Shown piece by piece: positions 45,528 to 54,624 of a DNA stretch of 64,000 bases. The position numbers and the translations under genes are program-made. Every line of letters starts with the position of its first letter. Positions within the stretch are counted from its first letter, which is position 1. The notes under the pieces were generated by a model that ran no database searches, was not told the DNA's origin, and saw nothing but the letters and a program-made list of their open reading frames with translations. Source of the DNA: Geosiphon pyriformis uo1 (taxonomy: Eukaryota; Fungi; Glomeromycota); assembly GCA_016748015.1 (NCBI GenBank), contig JAAOMT010000276.1, positions 248,001-312,000 on the forward strand. Direction: 5' to 3'.

Positions 45528-45663
45528 TATTACTAACGAAAGAATTTGAATACAGATACACAAATATAGAAAAATAAAAAGATTGTTTATAAGAGTTGGC
45601 TTCTAAATTTAGATTCGTTACCTATTTTTGTTGTCTGACCTATATATAGGTTTTTTGATATTT

Positions 45664-45718
45664 GGGGCGTGCTGCAACAAAACCAGACAAAGTGAACATT
45701 TGACGTCATTTGGGCATC
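45664..45718 (+). repeat. Left TIR (45 bp perfect, 52/55 extended)
   Basis: ggggcgtgctgcaacaaaaccagacaaagtgaacatttgacgtca(tttgggcatc); preceded by attt. Confidence 0.97.
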
Positions 45719-46079
45719 GGGCCCGAAAATTTTATTTTCGCTGTTGCTTTGTCCGTAGCTTTTTAATAATTCAATATTCACCATATAAAATAGTTACAGT
45801 AAGTAGGCCAAAAATATAACCCACAGTCCTTTGCTTTTATATTTCGCTATTTTTTTTTTTTTTTTTTGTTAACTTAATCTGATGCTTTGTTTTATGTTCC
45901 TGAGCAGCTTTGACCGTGACAAAGTCATTGTTTTTTTAAATCACTGACATTAGTATTAACGCAATAACGATAAATATTAGGTCCAGTTACTTTCTATTGC
46001 ATTTTAGCACAAATGCTTTCGCTATACGAACTTGCTTCTTAAGAGCCAGAGAACTAGAATAACGAATAAATTATCATTT

Positions 46080-46600
46080 ACCTATATGTCAAAATCAGGA
46101 TACTAGTCTCGCAGGATTTCTCGAAGATGCGGAAATCAACGCCCACGTATTTAGCATTTGGAAGCTTACCAAATGTTCCATTAAATTTGGCGGTTTTCCT
46201 TGGAGGATATGAACTTTTTGCTTAAGAAATAATAATTAGTTCACTGATTAAACTTTCCTTAAAGCTAATAATAACTCTTTGGTGGGAGATAGAAAAGGAG
46301 TAATATTATGCTACTATAAATGGTGGTGTTAACATAAGACATACTTTTTTCAGCGCCGTTTTCCTTCCTCACTTCTTTACAAAGGTTTTCATAGTGTTGC
46401 GCTTTTTCTCCAAGCTTTTATTTACGCCTGAACTAGTGTCTTCTAATTCTGCGTTTCCCAAGATTCCGTTAAAAACTCGGGGAAAAGAGTTTTCCTTTTC
46501 AGATAACTCGTAGTAAATCATTAGTCTCTGGGGTTGTAAATATTCTAACAATTTACTGCATACCGATATAGTACTCTCATTTTCTTTTTCCTGTGAATTT
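46080..46600 (-). pseudogene. Possible degraded, intron-containing coding remnant inside the transposon
   Basis: Two open stretches (..LLEYLQPQRLMIYYELSEKENSFPRVF.. and AKSSYPPRKTAKFNGTFGKLPNAKYVGVDFRIF) separated by GTATGT...AG intron-like sequence; no family recognised. Confidence 0.3.
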
Positions 46601-47015
46601 AATTAATTACATGTATATTCGAACAAACGACAGAGTAAACAAGCGGTGGCTTAGCGTGGGTGACGTAACATGAAAATTTTTCACATCATACATCAGCCGC
46701 TATGTATCAACAACGCGTCTTCTCCAGACCTCATCTTGTCCCCATGCACCTGCCGCACCAACCCGTGTTATAAACGCAAGTTGCCCATTATCAGTTTCTT
46801 TGGTCCATTCTATTCTCTTCACCATCGCAAAAGTTTTCTACATTCTACACGTAAGTTCGACATAGGCCGCGTTGATTACCTCTTTGCGCACGCGTGGTGA
46901 AATTTTGCTCATTTGCTGACAATTTACAGTTTGCCTGGTTGCCCGCGCCATTTTAAATATTAGGCATTTCTCAAGTTGAGTGCTCTTCTAGTTTATGCTT
47001 TTACTAGCATCCATG

Positions 47016-47403
47016 GTATCCTACGCTCGTATGGTTAGCCCTGGACCGATGTTTGGATTAGAGGTCGCAGGATAATCATTATAACTCGCTCTCTGTGGCT
47101 TATAATGCCTACTCCTGGATGCTCTCTTCCAGTATACCAAACAACTAAGTATCCTACGCTCGTATGGTTAGCCCTGGACCGATGTTTGGATTAGAGGTCG
47201 CAGGATAATCATTATAACTCGCTCTCTGTGGCTTATAATGCCTACTCCTGGATGCTCTCTTCCAGTATACCAAACAACTAAGTATCCTACGCTCGTATGG
47301 TTAGCCCTGGACCGATGTTTGGATTAGAGGTCGCAGGATAATCATTATAACTCGCTCTCTGTGGCTTATAATGCCTACTCCTGGATGCTCTCTTCCAGTA
47401 TAC
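47016..47403. repeat. Perfect tandem repeat, 133-bp unit x 2.9
   Basis: Units start at 47016, 47149 and 47282 (gtatcctacgctcgtatgg...); no mismatches seen. Confidence 0.96.
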
Positions 47404-47498
47404 TAGCTTGTTAACGGATGCTATTGCTTTGTTTTCATTGCGATAAATATCTACTAGCAGCAATACTCATAAGGCTTTTTTCCAGACTAAACAATAAT

Positions 47499-49960
47499 AT
47501 GGATTTCGACCATTATGTTGCCGATTACCAAATGATCTCTGATCCAAAAAATTGGAGCGCTCTGGATTGTCTACATTATCTCAAAGAACGCGTAGATTTT
47601 AGCTCTGATAGCAAAAATGACATCCTTAAGGCGTTTAGAAGAAGATTTAAGAATGTCAGTCAATCTACAGCAATACTAGCTGGACCCAAAAAGAAGGCAT
47701 GCGACCGCCAAAGAAAGTTTCAAGAGAAGGGAAATCATCGACTTCTTTGAAAAGCAGGACCAAGCATTCGCGATTGTATGTAATTGCCCGTTTGCAGGAT
47801 TGGTTTGTTACACTATATTTCAATAACAACTATTGTTTATAGCGAAAAAATGACAGGGATGTTTTCCAAGCCGTTGATAGCGCAAAAGCAGCGATCGCAA
47901 AGTCCGCAAAAACGCAAATTATGAGAGTGAGCACCACTTCGTTTTGTTTTTCAGTAGGATGAGTGTACTTTGGCTTTTCATATCGATATTGACATGATTT
48001 AAGACGTTAGACGGGCCTATAATAGAAGGCCACATCAGTGTTGCTGGGCATAAGCGTGTAAGTCAATTGTTCTTATTAATTCATTTGCTCCTATGAAATG
48101 GTGCTAAATATATTGTATTGGCATAGCAACGAGATCCTGCAGAAGATGATACAGATGACGATACCGAGGATGATACGGAGGGCAAAAACAAGATACTGAA
48201 AAAAGTGAGTATTAAGCATGTTATTATTCTGGAAAAGTCCTTCCATTATTACGCTCTAAGAAGATTCCGTTACAGAATACGCTCCCAAGGCTTCAGCGAA
48301 AAACCAACACTATTACATGAAGATACAGTCACCCATTCCGCTGAGCATGACGATTGCAACGCTGAGGGCGAAACCCACAGAAATGTGGCAGAGGATGAAA
48401 ACGTAACGGTAAGAGTTTAAGGTTCCGTAGCTTTAGTTGGGCCCATTTGGATTTTTCGACAAAAGGAGAAATTAACATTAAGGTACTTACTTTACACCCG
48501 ATTTAAAGGAGGATATCGACGATCAAGCCCTCTTGGCGAGGAATCTTTTAGACGAAGCGCAAGAAATTCCATTAGAGTTAAAAAACCTTCTTGACGCCTT
48601 TCAAACATATTGTCAGGGATCAGAGAACTTGTTGACGAGCAACGGTATAATAGACCTTAGGCCGTCGTCAGAATTTGTCCTCTCCTATACGGACGAATGT
48701 GATTACAACGAGTTGCTTGAACGTACCTTCAATCCCATTGATGAGATATTCCCCGAAGCAGCTTTCACTTTTCTCCTTGAATTTTTTTCCAAGGTACGAA
48801 TTATCATAAAAGAAATAGTAATAATGATTATCGTAAATCCGACTTATCACTCTTCATTTTCTTAATAGAGTCTAACTTGTCAGCATTGGTATGACGAGAT
48901 CGAGAGATTGCTGGATCCAGAACATGATCCATTTATTAAAAATATGAAGAGGTTCATGTTTGAGGTTCTTCCTATCTTGTAGGTAACTGCACTGCATTTC
49001 TCTTAAGAAGATATTCTAATGTGGTTTTTCTTTGCTTCAGTCTTGATGCGTTTGCTATGGGATCTGAAAACCCAATGAAGGAAAGGAATATGGGAGAAGA
49101 GGAGTACATGACAGCATTCATCCATCCCATGTTGAAGAAAGCGCTTGGAAGATTTGCGAACCTGCGATATAAGCCGTAAGTGAAAATCGTTTCCGATTGC
49201 ATTTGTACCTAAACAACTTACTCTTTTGTACTCTGCTAGTGGTGATAAAGCGATAGAGGCGTCTGCATACCGAAAATCAATTACAGCGCAATCGGGAAAT
49301 CCGGATAGAGCAGACGGTATCGCCTACACGTCAAACAAGAAGCCTTACGAAATATGTGTGGTCGAAGGGAGCAAACCTTACGATACTGAGAACGGAAAAG
49401 AAACACAAGATTTCATCCAAAACACCCGTGCCGCAAAAGATATGATTAATTTTCTAGTAACTCAAGAAGTCAAGCAGAAAAGGGCTCTGCCAACATTCTT
49501 TCGAACCTTCATGGTCCAAAGTTTCGAGACAAGTCTGCGCTTCTATTTTATGGATTACCTGAGTAAGTACTGTATACGTATATATATTATATATTGCATT
49601 GTTTACTGAGTTTACGGAAACTTTTTTTAGGTTTTTACAGAATATTTGAGATTGAAGCCTGTGAGCTCCCAGTAGATCTGGCGGAAATAAATTTGTTTCC
49701 TTTTCTTTTCCGTGCGGTCATTACATGGGCGGTAAGTCCAAGAACCTTAGGCCGACGCAGAATTAGTTTTTAGTAATTACTTTTAACTCCTATTCTAGAT
49801 CCTGGCAGGAAATACTGATAAAGAGTTTCAAACATTTCGGAATTCCAAGCGAAGCTCAAGAGTCAGTAATGCACATAATTTGAGAGTGCTTGCTCGATTG
49901 CAGCATAACAAGGCACGTCCAGGCAACAAAAAAAGCTTAAAAATGAAAAATATAATTTAG
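47499..49960 (+). pseudogene. Spliced fungal cargo gene with a C-terminal PD-(D/E)xK nuclease-like region; frameshift in exon 1
   Basis: Many GT-AG introns. Exons include MDFDHYVADY..., EEEYMTAFIHPMLKKAL and GDKAIEASAYRK..NPDRADGIAY...YEICVVEGSKP. Frame change near 47700. Confidence 0.7.
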
Positions 49961-50698
49961 ATTCATAGTAGCTTATTCATTTAATATGTAGTGACCATAG
50001 CGGAAGCATAATCTGTTGTGATAATCGACTCTTTGCATATAGTAGCCCCCGGGATTAAGACTGAACGTGTATTTGTATTTATGAGACGCGCATTATGAAG
50101 GGTTGACTGTATTGGATATATATACATAAATGTTATTTCGTAATAATAACTTGCGTCAGGGGAGTACAAACAGTTTGTAATATATGGATATCTCCAAACT
50201 ACGTTGAAATTACCAAAGCTGGTAGACATAGTAAACACCATAAACTGTACTATTGATTTATGATTCAAGCTTTGATACCGTAGTATAGTGTACGGTTGTT
50301 CTCTATAATCGCTATTTCATTTCTTGCGAGAACGAGAATTTTCTGGGCTTAGATTCAACAGACAGAATTCCGATGTGCGCAAACTCCGATATTTATTATT
50401 GTTACCATTTCATGAAAATGAAGGGTTTAGATACGTGTTTCGAGATCAGACTTAATAAAAGAAACGCAAGTAATTTGGATCAATTATAAAGGCATACAGG
50501 GTTATCCCTCCATGTAACGACCCTCTTATTCCTCTATTTTTCTTTTTTTCCTTGGTTCTTGAAATGATTCTGCCAACATCCGTTTAAGAGCTTTTATATA
50601 CACGGCTACCCTATGTATAGTACATAATGAATGCACAATATTATTAAAATTTTACAAAACCAGACAAACTGACATAAAATATATATATATATATATAT

Positions 50699-52479
50699 GT
50701 GGTAGACGACACAATTATTATGAACGAATATGAGAAAGCTCTCCGGTTTTTAGAACTAGGCTGTGGATGCGGTTGCTCGGCTAAGCTGCCCAAAGAAGAA
50801 TTTGCTGAATTGCGAGAAGACTTTCAAGCGCTAACAAAATCCGAACAAGACATTTTCTTAATGGCCCAACTCAGGCCCATGGATGGGGGAGCGATCAGTA
50901 CTAGCCGACGTCTCAAGAACAAGACTCGCATCAACAAGAGAACTATTTACTGCTGAAGTCGTAATACCCCTATTTGTCAAAAAACCTACCTCAATATGCT
51001 TGGTATTGGTCGCAATTATTTTGAAAATATCAGAAATCATCTGCTAAAGAATGGTCTTCTACCACGGGTCCATGGTAATGTAAAAAGAATGCCACGGTGA
51101 AAAACCAGGATGGTCATCAATATTGACGTGGCTACCGCGGTCAAGAATTTTTTGCTAAATTATGCTGAAGTTCATGGTTTGCCCAGCCCGGTAAGAAACG
51201 TCAACCGAGTTACCCAATCAATCATCTTTTTACCAGCGGAAATGAGCTATAAGTCTGTTCACCGTGACTTTTTGGCTGGTCTAGAAGAAGATAGTAAATT
51301 GCGTGCCCTCAAATATGATGCATTTCGCAAATTATGGCATCAGCTTACCCCGTACATTCAAATTATGAGTCCTCGAACTGATTTATGCGATACCTGTCAA
51401 CAGTTGCGGAATGACATGCAGTTCAAAGCCCGTAAAGAGGAAGAGGCCCAAGACTTATTGAAGAAGTATAAAGAACATCTAGCCAAAGCCAAGTTAGAAC
51501 GAAACTATTATAACAAAAATACCAAGTTGGCGGAAGAACACAGAAAGCTTGTCGACCAGAATTATTCTGTTGTTTCAGTGAAAGGCAAAATACCATACTG
51601 CAGCATGGACGCTATTGCTCACTACAGTTACGACTGAGCCCAAAATGTCCATGTACCCCATTCGGATCAACAGATTGGCAAGGTGTATTACCTTAGTGCT
51701 CGCAAGGTACACTTGTTTGGTGTCCAAGATGAAGCGGTGCGCGAGCAAATTAATTATGTACTGGATGAGAACGAACTTCTTGGAAAAGGTCCGAATGGTA
51801 CGCTAAGCCTGGTCTTTGATGGAATCAAACAATTGAATAAAGGCGAGAAGCACTTGAAGGTTACTTGCGACAATGCGGGAGGGCAAAACAAAAACAATAC
51901 GACTATTTGGTTTTATCTGTACTTGGTAATTGTTGGCTATTACGAAAGTATTGAGTTAAATTTTATGGTTCCCGGTCATACCAAATTCAAATGTGATGGA
52001 AGCTTTGGTCTAATTAAAAGACTTTACCGTAAGACCACGGTAGATTGTGTAGATCATGTGGTAGAGGTAGTAAAAAGGTCCAGTATTGCCGGACTAAACA
52101 AAGCTCGGCGTTATAATGGTAAAGAGGGTTTCCAATATCTAGATATTTTAAGTAGTTTGGCGGTCTATTTCAAGAAGCTGCCGGGCATGCAGAAGTTTCA
52201 ACATTTCCTCTTTACTAGTGCTAATCCCGGTGTAGTCAAAGCCCAAGAAACCGCTAATGTCCCTTCCAGGAATTCAAGCTACTGAAAACCAGTAAACTCG
52301 AGGCTTCAAAGATCATACAAAAAACCAAGGCCTTATCATTTCCAATGCTGACCCCTTCTCCAATGAAACATGAGCGGCAAGAATATCTTTATAATTATAT
52401 TCGTCCTTTTGTCCGCGATGAATTCAAAGATATTACATGCCCAAGACCAACCTATACTGGTAATGAACAAAACATTTAA
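50699..52479 (+). CDS. Sola-type DDD transposase in genetic code 4 (TGA=Trp); one frameshift at about 52259
   Basis: ORFs 50699, 51110 and 51683 share one frame, broken only by TGA at 50954, 51098 and 51635. Motifs: CGCGC, CQKTYL, PRVHGN, PRTDLCDTC, SYDWAQ..P..QIGKVYY, CDNAGGQNKN, FMVPGHTKFKCDGSFG. The shifted frame gives RQEYLYNYIRPFV..DITCPRP. Confidence 0.9.
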
Positions 52480-52595
52480 CCAGTTTTGCACGTCACTGTA
52501 TCCTTGCTGCCATTAAGCTTAATAAGTTTAATCTCTCAACTTTTCAAAGCAAAAAAATACTAAAATAATTTATAACTTAATATAAATAAAATTTT

Positions 52596-53569
52596 ATGAC
52601 AAACATAATCAATGAACTCCAAGAGAGAAACAAAAGTCTAGCAGAAGAAAATAATCAATTAAAAGAAAAATTTGGTGTTAATCAAGATAATAATCTAACT
52701 CTAACAGAAATTAGACAACAGTTAGTTGAAGCATTGAGAGATATGCGTTATACTAACAATGCTGATGAAGAATTACTGGATGACATTATGACCTATTATC
52801 CTGGGCAAAACTGACCAAAATTTTGTGAAAATTTCCCAGTTAAGTTAGGTCGACAAATTCATATTGAATGCTTATACAAATTCATTATGTATTGAAAAAA
52901 TTCCTTTAAACGCCACCAAGAAATTAAGGAGTTAAAGCATGAAAAGAACCAGTTGACCTTAAAAAGTGAGGTGCTTGAAAGGGAACTTGAACATTCTGAG
53001 AAGCAAGCTAAACACTTTAAAAAAATCATCACAGAAATCTTACAAGAACATTATGAATATTTCATCTCAACAGATGAAAATGATAAGCTTTCTTTTACCA
53101 TAGACACTGAAAAAAATGAAAATTGACTTCAAGAATTAATAGACAAAATTAGCAACAAAGAGCATGAAGGCCTTATTGCTGAAATTATTGAAAGTTGATT
53201 AAAGAGGCTCTTGAAACTAGTAAAAAATGAAATGATGCTCAAAAAGCAGAGTTAAGAGAAGAAATTAGAGATAAGTCTGAAGTCATTCGAGAGAATCGTG
53301 TGATAATCGAAAACCAAGAAAAAGAAATCCAAAAATTATGGGAGGAAGCACGGGATAATTCAGAATTGGTGAGAGAAGCTCGGAAGATAATTCAAAGGCA
53401 AGAAATGTTACTTAATTTATCTAATAAACCTTTACCTTTCTTACCTAAGAAGTCAAACAAATTTAAACGAATAGGAGTGGCAATAAAAAGAAAGTTTTCC
53501 CAATTAGCAGAAAATGTTAAGTTTCAAAGACGAGAAATGGTTGCTCAGATAGAAGTTAAAGTCAAGTAG
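52596..53569 (+). CDS. Mollicutes-endobacterium-like coiled-coil protein (code 4); one frameshift at about 53200
   Basis: TGA at 52812, 52893, 53124, 53196 and 53228 read as Trp. No introns. Ends KPLPFLPKKSNKFK...MVAQIEVKVK*. Confidence 0.75.
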
Positions 53570-53571
53570 CG

Positions 53572-54185
53572 ATGAGAGAATTGCTTTATACAATCTTGGA
53601 GTTAGAGGAGTGAGGCAAAGACACAACGTGTGATTTTTGCCCTAACTTTAACAAAAGAAACAAGGCAGTTTGTCAAATCAGAACTCGTAATAAAGTGAGC
53701 CATAGGATAGTTAGTAACGCTTGTGCCTGTGAGGAGGGTAAGGAAAAATTTGAAAGTGGTGAATTGCCTAAATGCGAAAGATGCGGAGAGCTAAAAACTA
53801 GGATGGGTTTTCACTATAATTGTTCTGAGAGCAACGAAAAAGAACTTCCTTCTTTACCCAACGAGGAAAGATCTTCCACAAGATACGAACGCCAAATAAA
53901 CTCCTTACAAGAACAATTAAATGAAGCCGAATGAACCATGAGAATTTTATGGAGAAGTCCGAGGAATGAAGTAAAAGGCAAAAACAGGAGTTATTGGATC
54001 GAATAAAAGAGCTAGAAACGGAAGTAGAAAGATTAAAAAAGCAAACTCCCCAAGAAGTGGTTAATGAAGTAGAATCTTATAAAGAAGAAGTGGCTCGATT
54101 AAAAACTCTGTTAGAAAAATTGAATTCTCAACAGAAGACTCAAATTGAGGTTAAAAGGTGACCTTGATTGAAAATAAAGAAGTAA
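53572..54185 (+). CDS. Mollicutes-endobacterium-like CxxC plus coiled-coil protein (code 4); one frameshift at about 53935
   Basis: ATG 2 bp after the previous stop; CDFC and CERC motifs; TGA at 53611, 53932, 53967, 54159 and 54165; ends TQIEVKRWPWLKIKK*. Confidence 0.75.
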
Positions 54186-54200
54186 TTAAAAAAATTAGAA

Positions 54201-54255
54201 GATACCCGAGTGACGTCAAATGTTCACTTTGTCTGGTTTTGTTGCAGCACGCCCC
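54201..54255 (-). repeat. Right TIR
   Basis: 54211-54255 is the exact reverse complement of 45664-45708; followed by attt. Confidence 0.97.
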
Positions 54256-54624
54256 ATTTAATAGATTAAAAAATCTGCGAATTAAATTTGAACATTAATT
54301 TTAATGATGATGATGATGATGATGAGATGTTAACCTATCATTCACAAAAATTCACGAAAAAAATATTTGACAAAGCTTCCTTCCTTTCAGGTTACTAAAA
54401 TACTCAGTTTAAAATAAAATACTTGTTCCCTAAACCAAATTTTTTACCTGTCCTGTAAAAAAGTCAAAAATTCAACTATTTCCTCACATTAATTTTGTTT
54501 ATGCCCTCGGTGAATTCACAACTAATTTTAGGGCTTTTTGGCAAATGGTCGAATCCTTCAAATTTCCGCGCAAGAGTGCCGAGCAAGGGGAAAAAAGTTT
54601 TTTCATCACTTTTGTAAGTTTAAA

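Follow-up and report, generated by a model that had tools for sequence, protein, structure and literature searches.

The 64,000-nucleotide stretch of Geosiphon pyriformis DNA analysed here (hereafter the window) contains an element of about 8.6 kb (45660-54259, both target-site duplications included), bounded by two terminal inverted repeats (TIRs) with ATTT on each side, whose three core genes probably follow a private code, in which UGA stands for tryptophan (Trp), whereas in the cargo and in the genes of the host UGA is a stop. Such a code would be served either by conditional or message-specific decoding in the cytoplasm or by an obligate phase of expression in an endobacterium. The narrower reading, to which an even chance is given, is that of a nuclear Sola1-like transposon with core genes that depend on the fungal cell to decode UGA as Trp. 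The use of TGA and TGG as synonyms under selection, beside linked genes that avoid TGA, points to a new decoding route.

The element and its family

Both copies of the ATTT duplication (45660-45663 and 54256-54259, unstranded) were read from the sequence. The left TIR (45664-45718, forward strand) begins 5'-GGGGCGTGCTGCAAC, and the right one (54201-54255, reverse strand) was returned by a repeat search, whose arms (45663-45718 and 54201-54256) span 56 nt at 95% identity; their outer 45 nt are identical (45664-45708 and 54211-54255), which confirms the perfect 45-bp TIRs and the ATTT duplication of the original prediction. Next to the left TIR, a subterminal region (45719-45862, forward strand) resembles the inverted right subterminal region of another copy, L062 (73% over 203 nt).

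The genome holds at least 40 similar TIR ends, and its transposase-like matches number at least 104; both lie on large nuclear contigs of up to 2 Mb, and 18 soil contigs bear TIR ends with 95-100% identity over 21-48 nt. Some of the genome matches seemed to adjoin long ORFs (1000-1180 aa), which proved to be runs of N. The duplications of the family follow a 4-bp AWWT pattern, mostly ATAT: matching pairs are found in copies L061 and L063 and in a 420-bp MITE (ATAT/ATAT), as well as at the element of the window (ATTT/ATTT), and ATAT, ATTT or AAAT adjoins nearly all single ends. A genome search for further copies with 4-bp duplications, proposed as a check, thus returned them, L061, L063 and the MITE included, and the idea of a TIR transposon that behaves like Sola1, with a 4-bp AWWT duplication, is borne out across the family. 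DNA depth over the unique parts of the element (about 80-90) is the same as over its flanks. The element is a member of a multicopy nuclear family with MITEs, and these MITEs, together with the consistent duplications, show that the family transposase acts on nuclear DNA. Less likely is a reading in which two independent ends flank a host gene: the ATTT on one side matches that on the other, and copies L061 and L063 share this build, yet the strong target preference of the family weakens the argument from the duplications for a single element.

A conserved, intronless core, composed of the transposase gene, ORF2 and ORF3, adjoins the right end. The module, on the forward strand throughout, begins with a leader common to copy L061 (50488-50719), followed by the gene of a DUF7869 DDE transposase (50720-52285; Pfam PF25273, E 3.7e-17), by means of which the family moves by cut-and-paste, giving 4-bp AWWT duplications. 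In-frame TGAs lie at 50954, 51098 and 51635, and the TGA at 52283 is probably the true stop, since four relatives have TAA there; read in code 4, frame +2 as a whole (50678-52513) counts 612 codons with 6 TGA and no TAA or TAG. ORF2 (52596-53566; frames 52590-53252 and 53153-53566) is TGA-rich, with a predicted coiled coil, and ORF3 (53560-54182; frames 53560-54003 and 53820-54182) has a predicted zinc ribbon and coiled coil. The claim that this right part is intronless, with ORFs that need TGA as Trp, holds in that the stops of the ORF2 frame (52590-53566) and of the ORF3 frame (53560-54182) are all TGA, but has to be amended, for each of the two ORFs carries one frameshift against the intact ORFs of relatives (312 and 223 codons, respectively, in L061); the window copy may therefore depend on other copies. 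Transcription of the core is seen in RNA-derived contigs colinear with the DNA over 52039-52451 and 53169-54139. Homology searches used the pieces between TGAs, read-through proteins serving only for in-script computation. Pfam matches to the pieces of ORF2 and ORF3, to the cargo exons and to the large ORFs upstream did not rise above weak noise of the coiled-coil or zinc-ribbon kind, apart from Lon_C in the soil element L137 and weak hints of a kinase and an AAA-ATPase; a PDB sequence search with ORF0 gave no match.

Behind the left end lies a variable cargo bay, occupied in the window copy by an expressed, spliced, standard-code gene (48488-49957, forward strand, its start being that of the first exon stretch and not a mapped 5' end), which ends in TAG and contains no TGA. 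The six exon stretches (48488-48790, 48869-48976, 49042-49173, 49241-49561, 49633-49728 and 49799-49957) are separated by five GT-AG introns (48791-48867, 48978-49041, 49175-49240, 49562-49631 and 49730-49798), all five confirmed by spliced contigs of RNA runs X2 and X3, so that the spliced gene expected in the left part does lie between the TIRs. Likewise, the notion of a composite of two codes stands, the core needing TGA as Trp and the spliced cargo gene using the standard code. Searches with this gene were run exon by exon, the joined model serving only for exon frames; they returned no Pfam family and some 10 weak genomic paralogues, the best at 64%. The cargo region also includes tandem repeats of 3 x 133 bp (47016-47414, unstranded; 100%, 100% and 95%), and in copy L224 the cargo likewise follows the left TIR and precedes the transposase.

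TGA and TGG in the core and in linked genes

Across 23 genomic copies, most of them with 2-5 TGA and no TAA or TAG (some carry TAA or TAG), each of the five transposase columns for Trp is mixed TGA/TGG. At least 13 switches between the two codons, in both directions, are placed on the copy tree, and dN/dS of the transposase is 0.06-0.15 (median 0.10). At the TGA columns, the residue in distant homologues is W or F/Y, and the share of TGA at the Trp columns (0.59) falls just below that of A in the other A/G-ending codon pairs (0.60-0.80). In the transposase frame of the best 80 soil-metagenome relatives there are 198 TGA, 124 TGG, 6 TAA and 1 TAG, the matched frame being free of TAA and TAG in 76 of the 80; each full-length copy, whether among the 23 genomic or the 80 soil ones, has at least one TGA, with a maximum per gene of 5 in one transposase and 9 in one ORF2. 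The TGA at 50954 occurs in 17 of 18 copies, in both main clades, and also in Ambispora and L137, a distribution that marks it as ancestral. In ORF3, the conserved Trp of the motif EEwSKRQKQ is TGA in the window copy and TGG in L061. These patterns of substitution indicate that TGA in the core genes behaves as a synonym of TGG, for Trp, under strong purifying selection, and they speak against the TGAs being a product of decay. An origin of the TGAs by hypermutation or a RIP-like process was considered and rejected, given the switches both ways, the omega of about 0.1 and the clean cargo.

The linked genes differ. In-frame TGA is absent (0 vs 19 TGG) from those host ORFs and cargo exons of the window that were counted, an absence which, together with the position of the core TGAs on Trp or aromatic columns of distant homologues, excludes chance. 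When linked genes were compared, the transposase had 195 TGA vs 126 TGG and ORF2/3 of the soil copies 236 vs 51 (core total, 431 vs 177), as against 39 TGA vs 194 TGG in the upstream cargo ORFs, the long ones having 0-2 TGA each. Avoidance of in-frame TGA is common to cargo and host genes. Between L153 and L174, dS is 0.8-1.4 and omega 0.2-0.4 for syntenic upstream genes (which could be flanks and not cargo, for no left TIR was found on contigs L174, L159 and L153), and dS is 1.39 and omega 0.08 for the transposase. GC3 of the transposase, which spans 0.16 to 0.41, tracks the GC of the upstream sequence (r=0.93, n=28).

In the transposase tree, the TGA-type clade is nested inside the fungal clade (support 100/98), and the lineage that uses TGA forms a single clade within the fungal part of the family; a copy from Gigaspora rosea nests among those of Geosiphon. 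The alternative set against the original prediction, namely standard-code fungal copies with TGG and no homologues in Mollicutes-related endobacteria, was found in part, in that sister fungal subfamilies use TGG. Relatives of the transposase occur in Rhizophagus, Gigaspora and Ambispora, the last with an intact copy that has 5 TGA and sits in a eukaryotic context, in an assembly which we take to have been made from sorted nuclei. Named relatives of the cargo come from Ambispora, Endogone and Entrophospora, and a 31-kb contig with a related copy carries genes for a CP2 factor, a kinase and a Crinkler. Bacterial relatives of the transposase amount to 68 loci, all at most 43% identical, among them a 2.07-kb insertion sequence (IS) of the same transposase family, with a 4-bp duplication, in the Desulfobacterium chromosome OY764894.2. 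In the soil element L137 all genes have TGA (3 in an HExxH ORF, 8 in a 796-codon Lon_C ORF). No relatives were found among viral contigs, no Mollicutes homologue in 185,579 species genomes (collections that may not include this host's endobacteria), and no close full-length homologue in 1.84 billion representative proteins.

Candidate routes of decoding

In the fungal cell, the core proteins would be made through a decoding of UGA as Trp that spares ordinary genes. Such decoding may be conditional or message-specific, for instance by way of a suppressor or an altered tRNA-Trp present in some state, in which case the core TGAs would gate transposition at the level of translation. ARAGORN returned no tRNA, whether in the window, across 60 loci or over 647 kb of DNA that carries the elements, and Rfam no match, SECIS included, at E up to 1 in 45600-54320; TGA alternates with TGG and not with Cys codons, contrary to what recoding of the selenoprotein type would give. 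The RNA contigs over 52039-52451 and 53169-54139, which may hide minor variants, show no differences from the DNA, and at the three transposase TGAs no A-to-G difference is listed in RNA contigs of unspecified tissue and stage. Leaky contexts (+4 C or CUAG) were not found at the TGAs, where +4 is mostly G, T or A.

The original prediction located the transposon in the genome of a Mollicutes-related endobacterium, from which it would shuttle to the nucleus. In this form, the core would be kept and expressed in code-4 endobacteria, the nuclear copies being either arrivals or one phase of a two-compartment cycle, with nuclear selection on the cargo and bacterial selection on the core. Geosiphon, Ambispora, Gigaspora and Endogone, which carry TGA-type copies, all belong to groups reported to harbour such endobacteria. 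The identity of these hosts and the nesting of the Gigaspora rosea copy among those of Geosiphon are consistent with a shuttle, as are an intronless, same-strand core that uses TGA as freely as code 4 does, the soil element with TGA in every gene and, as evidence that the family works in bacteria, the Desulfobacterium IS with its 4-bp duplication. Against it, neither the species genomes nor the representative proteins searched hold a Mollicutes match or a close full-length bacterial protein, and none of the 68 bacterial loci is from Mollicutes. Moreover, a genome in which TGA means Trp would let cargo drift to TGA, yet the linked cargo stayed TGG-based and essentially TGA-free over a dS of about 1, which counts against a prolonged stay in a code-4 genome; so do the co-divergence of this standard-code cargo with the TGA-using core, in synteny, and the core GC3 that follows linked sequence of nuclear type. 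The cargo has spliceosomal introns, copies lie in eukaryotic contexts in other Glomeromycotina (in Ambispora, presumably in sorted nuclei), and the MITEs with their consistent duplications bespeak transposase activity on nuclear DNA. Endobacterial residence is thus not supported, and a shuttle is considered unlikely.

A leaky stop that throttles transposition is just as doubtful. Among stops UGA leaks most, and eukaryotes misread it as Trp; TGA could thus be an ordinary stop, rare readthrough by near-cognate tRNA-Trp keeping transposition low, in agreement with its avoidance in host and cargo genes and with an mRNA that is present and unedited in the RNA contigs. With up to five TGAs in a transposase and nine in an ORF2, however, readthrough yields would multiply to vanishing; the TGA share, close to that of the A/G pairs, gives no sign of selection against additional TGAs, and the contexts described above are not leaky ones.

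It is quite improbable that the copies are relics, with the TGAs as real nonsense and the signal of selection stemming from unsampled, TGG-only masters or from a TGG-to-TGA bias. The frameshifts in ORF2 and ORF3 of the window copy and the TAA or TAG of some copies would fit such relics; an ancestral TGA at 50954, the presence of TGA in every full-length copy and the changes both ways on the tree do not, and hypermutation would have raised dN and affected the cargo. Lastly, translation of the core in, or its derivation from, mitochondria is hardly credible. Fungal mitochondria do read UGA as Trp, and the core is intronless, but the copies examined are all found, with their duplications, on large contigs of nuclear type, the depth of the element equals that of its flanks, cargo TGA avoidance and GC3 tracking count here as they do for endobacteria, and to our knowledge there is no route for nuclear mRNA into mitochondrial ribosomes.

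Relation to known systems and significance

The nuclear transposon with UGA-to-Trp decoding in the fungal cell, as preferred here, resembles several known systems and coincides with none. The signature of Sola1 is a 4-bp AWWT duplication. The Sola superfamily, which includes the Sola1 DNA transposons, was reportedly presented by Bao et al. 2009. With Sola1 the family of the window shares TIRs, cut-and-paste movement, the AWWT duplication, a DDE transposase, occurrence in Glomeromycotina and bacterial relatives; unlike Sola1, it has a core in which TGA reads as Trp, two extra core ORFs and a variable cargo bay. The name Sola1 is applied to the family provisionally, on the basis of behaviour and of Pfam DUF7869, its only family match. 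Sola1 has been reported in Rhizophagus (PMC5751038). Bacterial DUF7869 insertion sequences are similar in their transposase (35-43% identical), in 5'-GGSGGG termini and in 4-bp duplications (ATAT, TTAT, AGAT), but consist of a single standard-code ORF of 641 aa, with neither cargo nor ORF2 and ORF3.

In phages with recoded stop codons, some genes are compatible with the code of the host and others need the reassigned stop, usually with suppressor tRNAs. The element of the window likewise combines two gene sets and two decoding regimes in a standard-code host, the recoding being a possible gate on expression; unlike these phages, it resides in a eukaryotic nucleus, and no tRNA encoded by the element was found. 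As in Pack-MULEs, host-like genes that differ from copy to copy lie between the TIRs; unlike there, the cargo of the family includes whole, selected and expressed genes, and the element is potentially autonomous. Sequence in which UGA reads as Trp also enters fungal cells or nuclei with mitoviruses and with mitochondrial DNA copied to the nucleus, but the present family is a multicopy TIR transposon, selected and linked to standard-code genes. The use of a stop as a sense codon in particular gene sets is known from some phages and organelles; no report of it in a eukaryotic nuclear transposon was found in the papers searched, nor anything relevant on in-frame stops or readthrough in mycorrhizal transposons or on DUF7869.

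For annotation, these results carry a warning, as standard pipelines fragment the core genes, which can be seen from the public proteins of Geosiphon, Ambispora and Gigaspora. More generally, the apparent synonymy of TGA and TGG in about 100 copies, from one genome and many soils, implicates a major group of plant symbionts, and it bears on two questions, how a single cell may keep genetic codes apart and how transposons may restrain themselves.

TGA codons in the transposon core

If TGA is taken as a sense codon, frame +2 stays open for 612 codons (50678-52513) with six TGA and no TAA or TAG, and 52590-54182 is filled by further frames whose only stops are TGA, which bears out the original observation that the right part of the 8.6-kb element (45660-54259) requires TGA to be read as tryptophan. 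A piece of the long frame (51638-52282) matches the Pfam family DUF7869 (E 3.7e-17). The TGA at 52283 is shared with three other copies; to judge by the aligned sequences it is probably the true stop of the transposase, for five copies have TAA there. In relatives, the transposase is followed, before the right end, by two more same-strand ORFs, represented in the genomic copy L061 by ORF2 (coiled coil, 312 codons, 5 TGA) and ORF3 (zinc ribbon and coiled coil, 223 codons, 3 TGA). Both are broken in the window copy by one frameshift each; a conserved tryptophan of ORF3 is TGA in the window copy and in another genomic copy, L063, and TGG in L061.

Among 23 aligned genomic transposase copies (DNA identity 66-89%), all five tryptophan columns are mixed, the counts of TGA and TGG being 17 and 1 at 50954, 6 and 12 at 51098, 5 and 16 at 51335, 15 and 6 at 51635, and 17 and 6 at 51908. 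The majority of copies have 2-5 TGA and no TAA or TAG per ~530 codons, and the copy tree requires at least 13 switches between TGA and TGG. The TGA share, 0.59, compares with 0.60-0.80 for the A-ending member of the other A/G-ending codon pairs of the same gene. dN/dS between the window copy and its relatives is 0.06-0.15, at dS from 0.57 to saturation, and its median over all copy pairs is 0.10. In distant standard-code homologues, column 51335 is mostly W, and column 51635 is F or Y, within the motif SFDFAQQ. Window ORFs of the host with 524, 520, 269, 264 and 248 codons are free of in-frame TGA, and the count over host ORFs and cargo exons of the window is 0 TGA versus 19 TGG.

The transposase TGAs are therefore sense codons under selection, and the observation is confirmed by evidence stronger than was visible from the sequence alone. 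Decay, hypermutation or hidden masters with TGG only are at odds with two facts: at 50954 TGA is the ancestral state of both main clades, found also in Ambispora and in a soil element, and no full-length copy is without TGA.

A multicopy nuclear family and its relatives

The arms of the element, 56 nt each (45663-45718 and 54201-54256), are 95% complementary; the outer 45 nt are identical and ATTT stands on both sides (45660-45663 and 54256-54259), these two features just as first described. The search for further copies with 4-bp duplications, proposed at the same time, was successful: the 128-Mb assembly (792 contigs) holds at least 40 matches to the terminal inverted repeat (TIR) and at least 104 to the transposase piece, on contigs of up to 2 Mb, and the same 4 bp stand at the paired ends of L061, L063, a ~420 bp MITE (a miniature TIR element) and the window element. 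The 4 bp next to family ends are mostly ATAT, otherwise ATTT or AAAT, a target preference so strong that agreement between the two duplications says less for a single insertion than it might seem to. Against this doubt, L061 (7.9 kb) and L063 (7.2 kb) repeat the overall build of the window element. That the transposase acts on nuclear DNA is shown by the ends, the duplications and the MITEs. Open frames of more than 1000 aa from a six-frame search (L066-L068, contigs C692 and C604) were false, consisting of ~3 kb N runs adjoining transposase remnants.

Among named proteins the closest come from Geosiphon pyriformis (82%), Gigaspora rosea, Ambispora leptoticha and Rhizophagus, so that the host is almost certainly Geosiphon pyriformis itself or a species very near to it. 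In Ambispora, one copy runs for 505 codons without any stop other than five TGA, four of which fall on the same tryptophan columns; Gigaspora rosea has a decayed copy whose 51908 column is TGA. Standard-code fungal copies with TGG, which the original prediction had named as evidence against itself, do occur in the more distant subfamilies of Gigaspora margarita, Rhizophagus irregularis and R. clarus. JGI metagenomes gave 179 relatives, the best 80 of which (protein identity 74-94%) were analysed: 76 of these 80 have no TAA or TAG in the matched frame, the totals being 198 TGA, 124 TGG, 6 TAA and 1 TAG, and 18 soil contigs carry a TIR-like end 95-100% identical to that of the window over 21-48 nt. 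On two soil contigs with differing cargo (L178:5466-5877 and L202:6707-7118), a right TIR is followed ~350 bp on by a left TIR; possible explanations are tandem elements, a nested site that recurs, and a form with joined ends.

The protein tree places bacteria on one side and fungi on the other and, among fungi, the TGG-type copies as sister to a single TGA-type clade (support 100/98). One Gigaspora rosea copy (L143, QKWP01000665.1), 67-75% identical to the Geosiphon transposase, falls among Geosiphon and soil copies (support 99/97) although the host orders are distant, a placement that suggests horizontal transposon transfer among these fungi. The bacterial counterpart of the fungal family is a 2.07-kb insertion sequence of a Desulfobacterium sp. 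chromosome (OY764894.2; L073-L076 and L109), in at least five near-identical copies, with a single 641-aa ORF for a DUF7869 transposase, termini beginning 5'-GGSGGG and, as in the fungi, 4-bp duplications (ATAT, TTAT, AGAT). This behaviour of ends and duplications in both groups is that described for Sola1. Of the Sola assignment made originally, the Sola1-like duplication behaviour stands, and the endobacterial history is not supported; this cargo-carrying nuclear transposon is Sola1-like and belongs to a clade in whose core genes TGA serves as a tryptophan codon.

Core and cargo

The stretch between left TIR and transposase varies from copy to copy. In the window it holds the expected GT-AG spliced gene: contigs of two sequencing runs of the same organism (X2 and X3) skip five GT-AG introns from 48791 to 49798 and hence derive from RNA. 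Once spliced, the gene reads through ~390 codons to a terminal TAG without meeting a TGA; searched exon by exon, it matched no Pfam family and had only ~10 weak paralogues. Still within the cargo region, just upstream of this expressed gene, a 133-bp unit occurs three times head to tail (47016-47414; 100%, 100% and 95%). An unspliced contig of a 2025 run from another organism or sample (X4, organism B), aligned over 48572-50590, matches the cargo gene and the opening 100 nt of the core leader at ~98% identity, with a 250-bp gap at 50166-50417 and divergence from 50590, and indicates a close relative with the same cargo-core junction plus indels.

In soil elements the region upstream of the transposase carries long ORFs that lack introns. 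One family of 724-939 aa (L159:390-2696, L174:6756-8927, L202:1-2817 and L006:2733-3050) has Walker A (STSGKS) and Walker B (FAFDEA) motifs and a PD-(D/E)xK-like, nuclease-like tail, without a match in Pfam or PDB; it immediately precedes the transposase in several elements and lies behind the left TIR in L006 of Geosiphon. Others have kinase-like or AAA-ATPase-like genes. Soil contig L224 has upstream cargo of this general sort placed between left TIR and transposase. One such cargo gene has named relatives in Ambispora, Endogone and Entrophospora, and a 31-kb contig with a decayed copy also bears a CP2 transcription factor, a kinase and a Crinkler gene.

Core and cargo fall under two decoding regimes within one element, and codon use separates them cleanly: over the 80 contigs, TGA and TGG number 195 and 126 in transposases, 236 and 51 in ORF2/3, and 39 and 194 in upstream ORFs, the long ones having 0-2 TGA apiece. 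Soil contigs L153 and L174 have four syntenic upstream genes in common (dS 0.8-1.4, omega 0.2-0.4), their adjoining transposases being at dS 1.39 and omega 0.08. Transposase GC3 (0.16-0.41) follows the GC of upstream sequence (r=0.93, n=28, the contigs not all being independent).

What reads the TGAs

Residence in, or shuttling from, a code-4 endobacterium of the host, as originally proposed, would account for a soil element such as L137:631-7049 (ERZ27256897 k141_45343; 6.4 kb, different 41-bp TIRs, transposase 63% identical), in which all genes have TGA, among them a HExxH metalloprotease-like ORF (3 TGA) and a 796-codon ORF with a Lon_C protease domain (8 TGA, no TAA or TAG); moreover, host endobacteria may be unsampled. 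Yet a genome reading TGA as tryptophan would leave every resident gene free to drift towards TGA, whereas the cargo is undrifted over synonymous distances near saturation beside a drifted core, whose silent-site composition tracks the linked eukaryote-type sequence, and the transposase works on nuclear DNA. Nor was a Mollicutes relative found in 185,579 species genomes or in viral contigs, or a close full-length bacterial protein among 1.84 billion representative proteins. Endobacterial residence is thus not supported, and the evidence points elsewhere.

There is no tRNA gene in the window, no tRNA carried by an element anywhere in 647 kb of DNA that holds such elements, and no match to any Rfam family, SECIS included; a tRNA-Gly(GCC) gene ~170 bp from the TIR end of another copy (L011:1717-1787, L055:3233-3303, contig C618) is the only tRNA detected close to any element. 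X2 and X3 RNA contigs also cover 52039-52451, 52886-53181 and 53169-54139, colinear with the DNA; at contig level, from which minor editing could escape, they reveal no RNA editing, no A-to-G change and no listed difference at the three transposase TGAs. A leaky stop context was not found either, the base after TGA being G 51, T 40, A 32 and C 18 times, with no CUAG. Chance readthrough, with up to five TGA per transposase and nine per ORF2, would give vanishing yields. The preferred reading, with roughly an even chance of being right, is hence that UGA is really decoded as tryptophan inside the fungal cell, that ordinary messages escape this decoding, and that the element exploits it as a gate.
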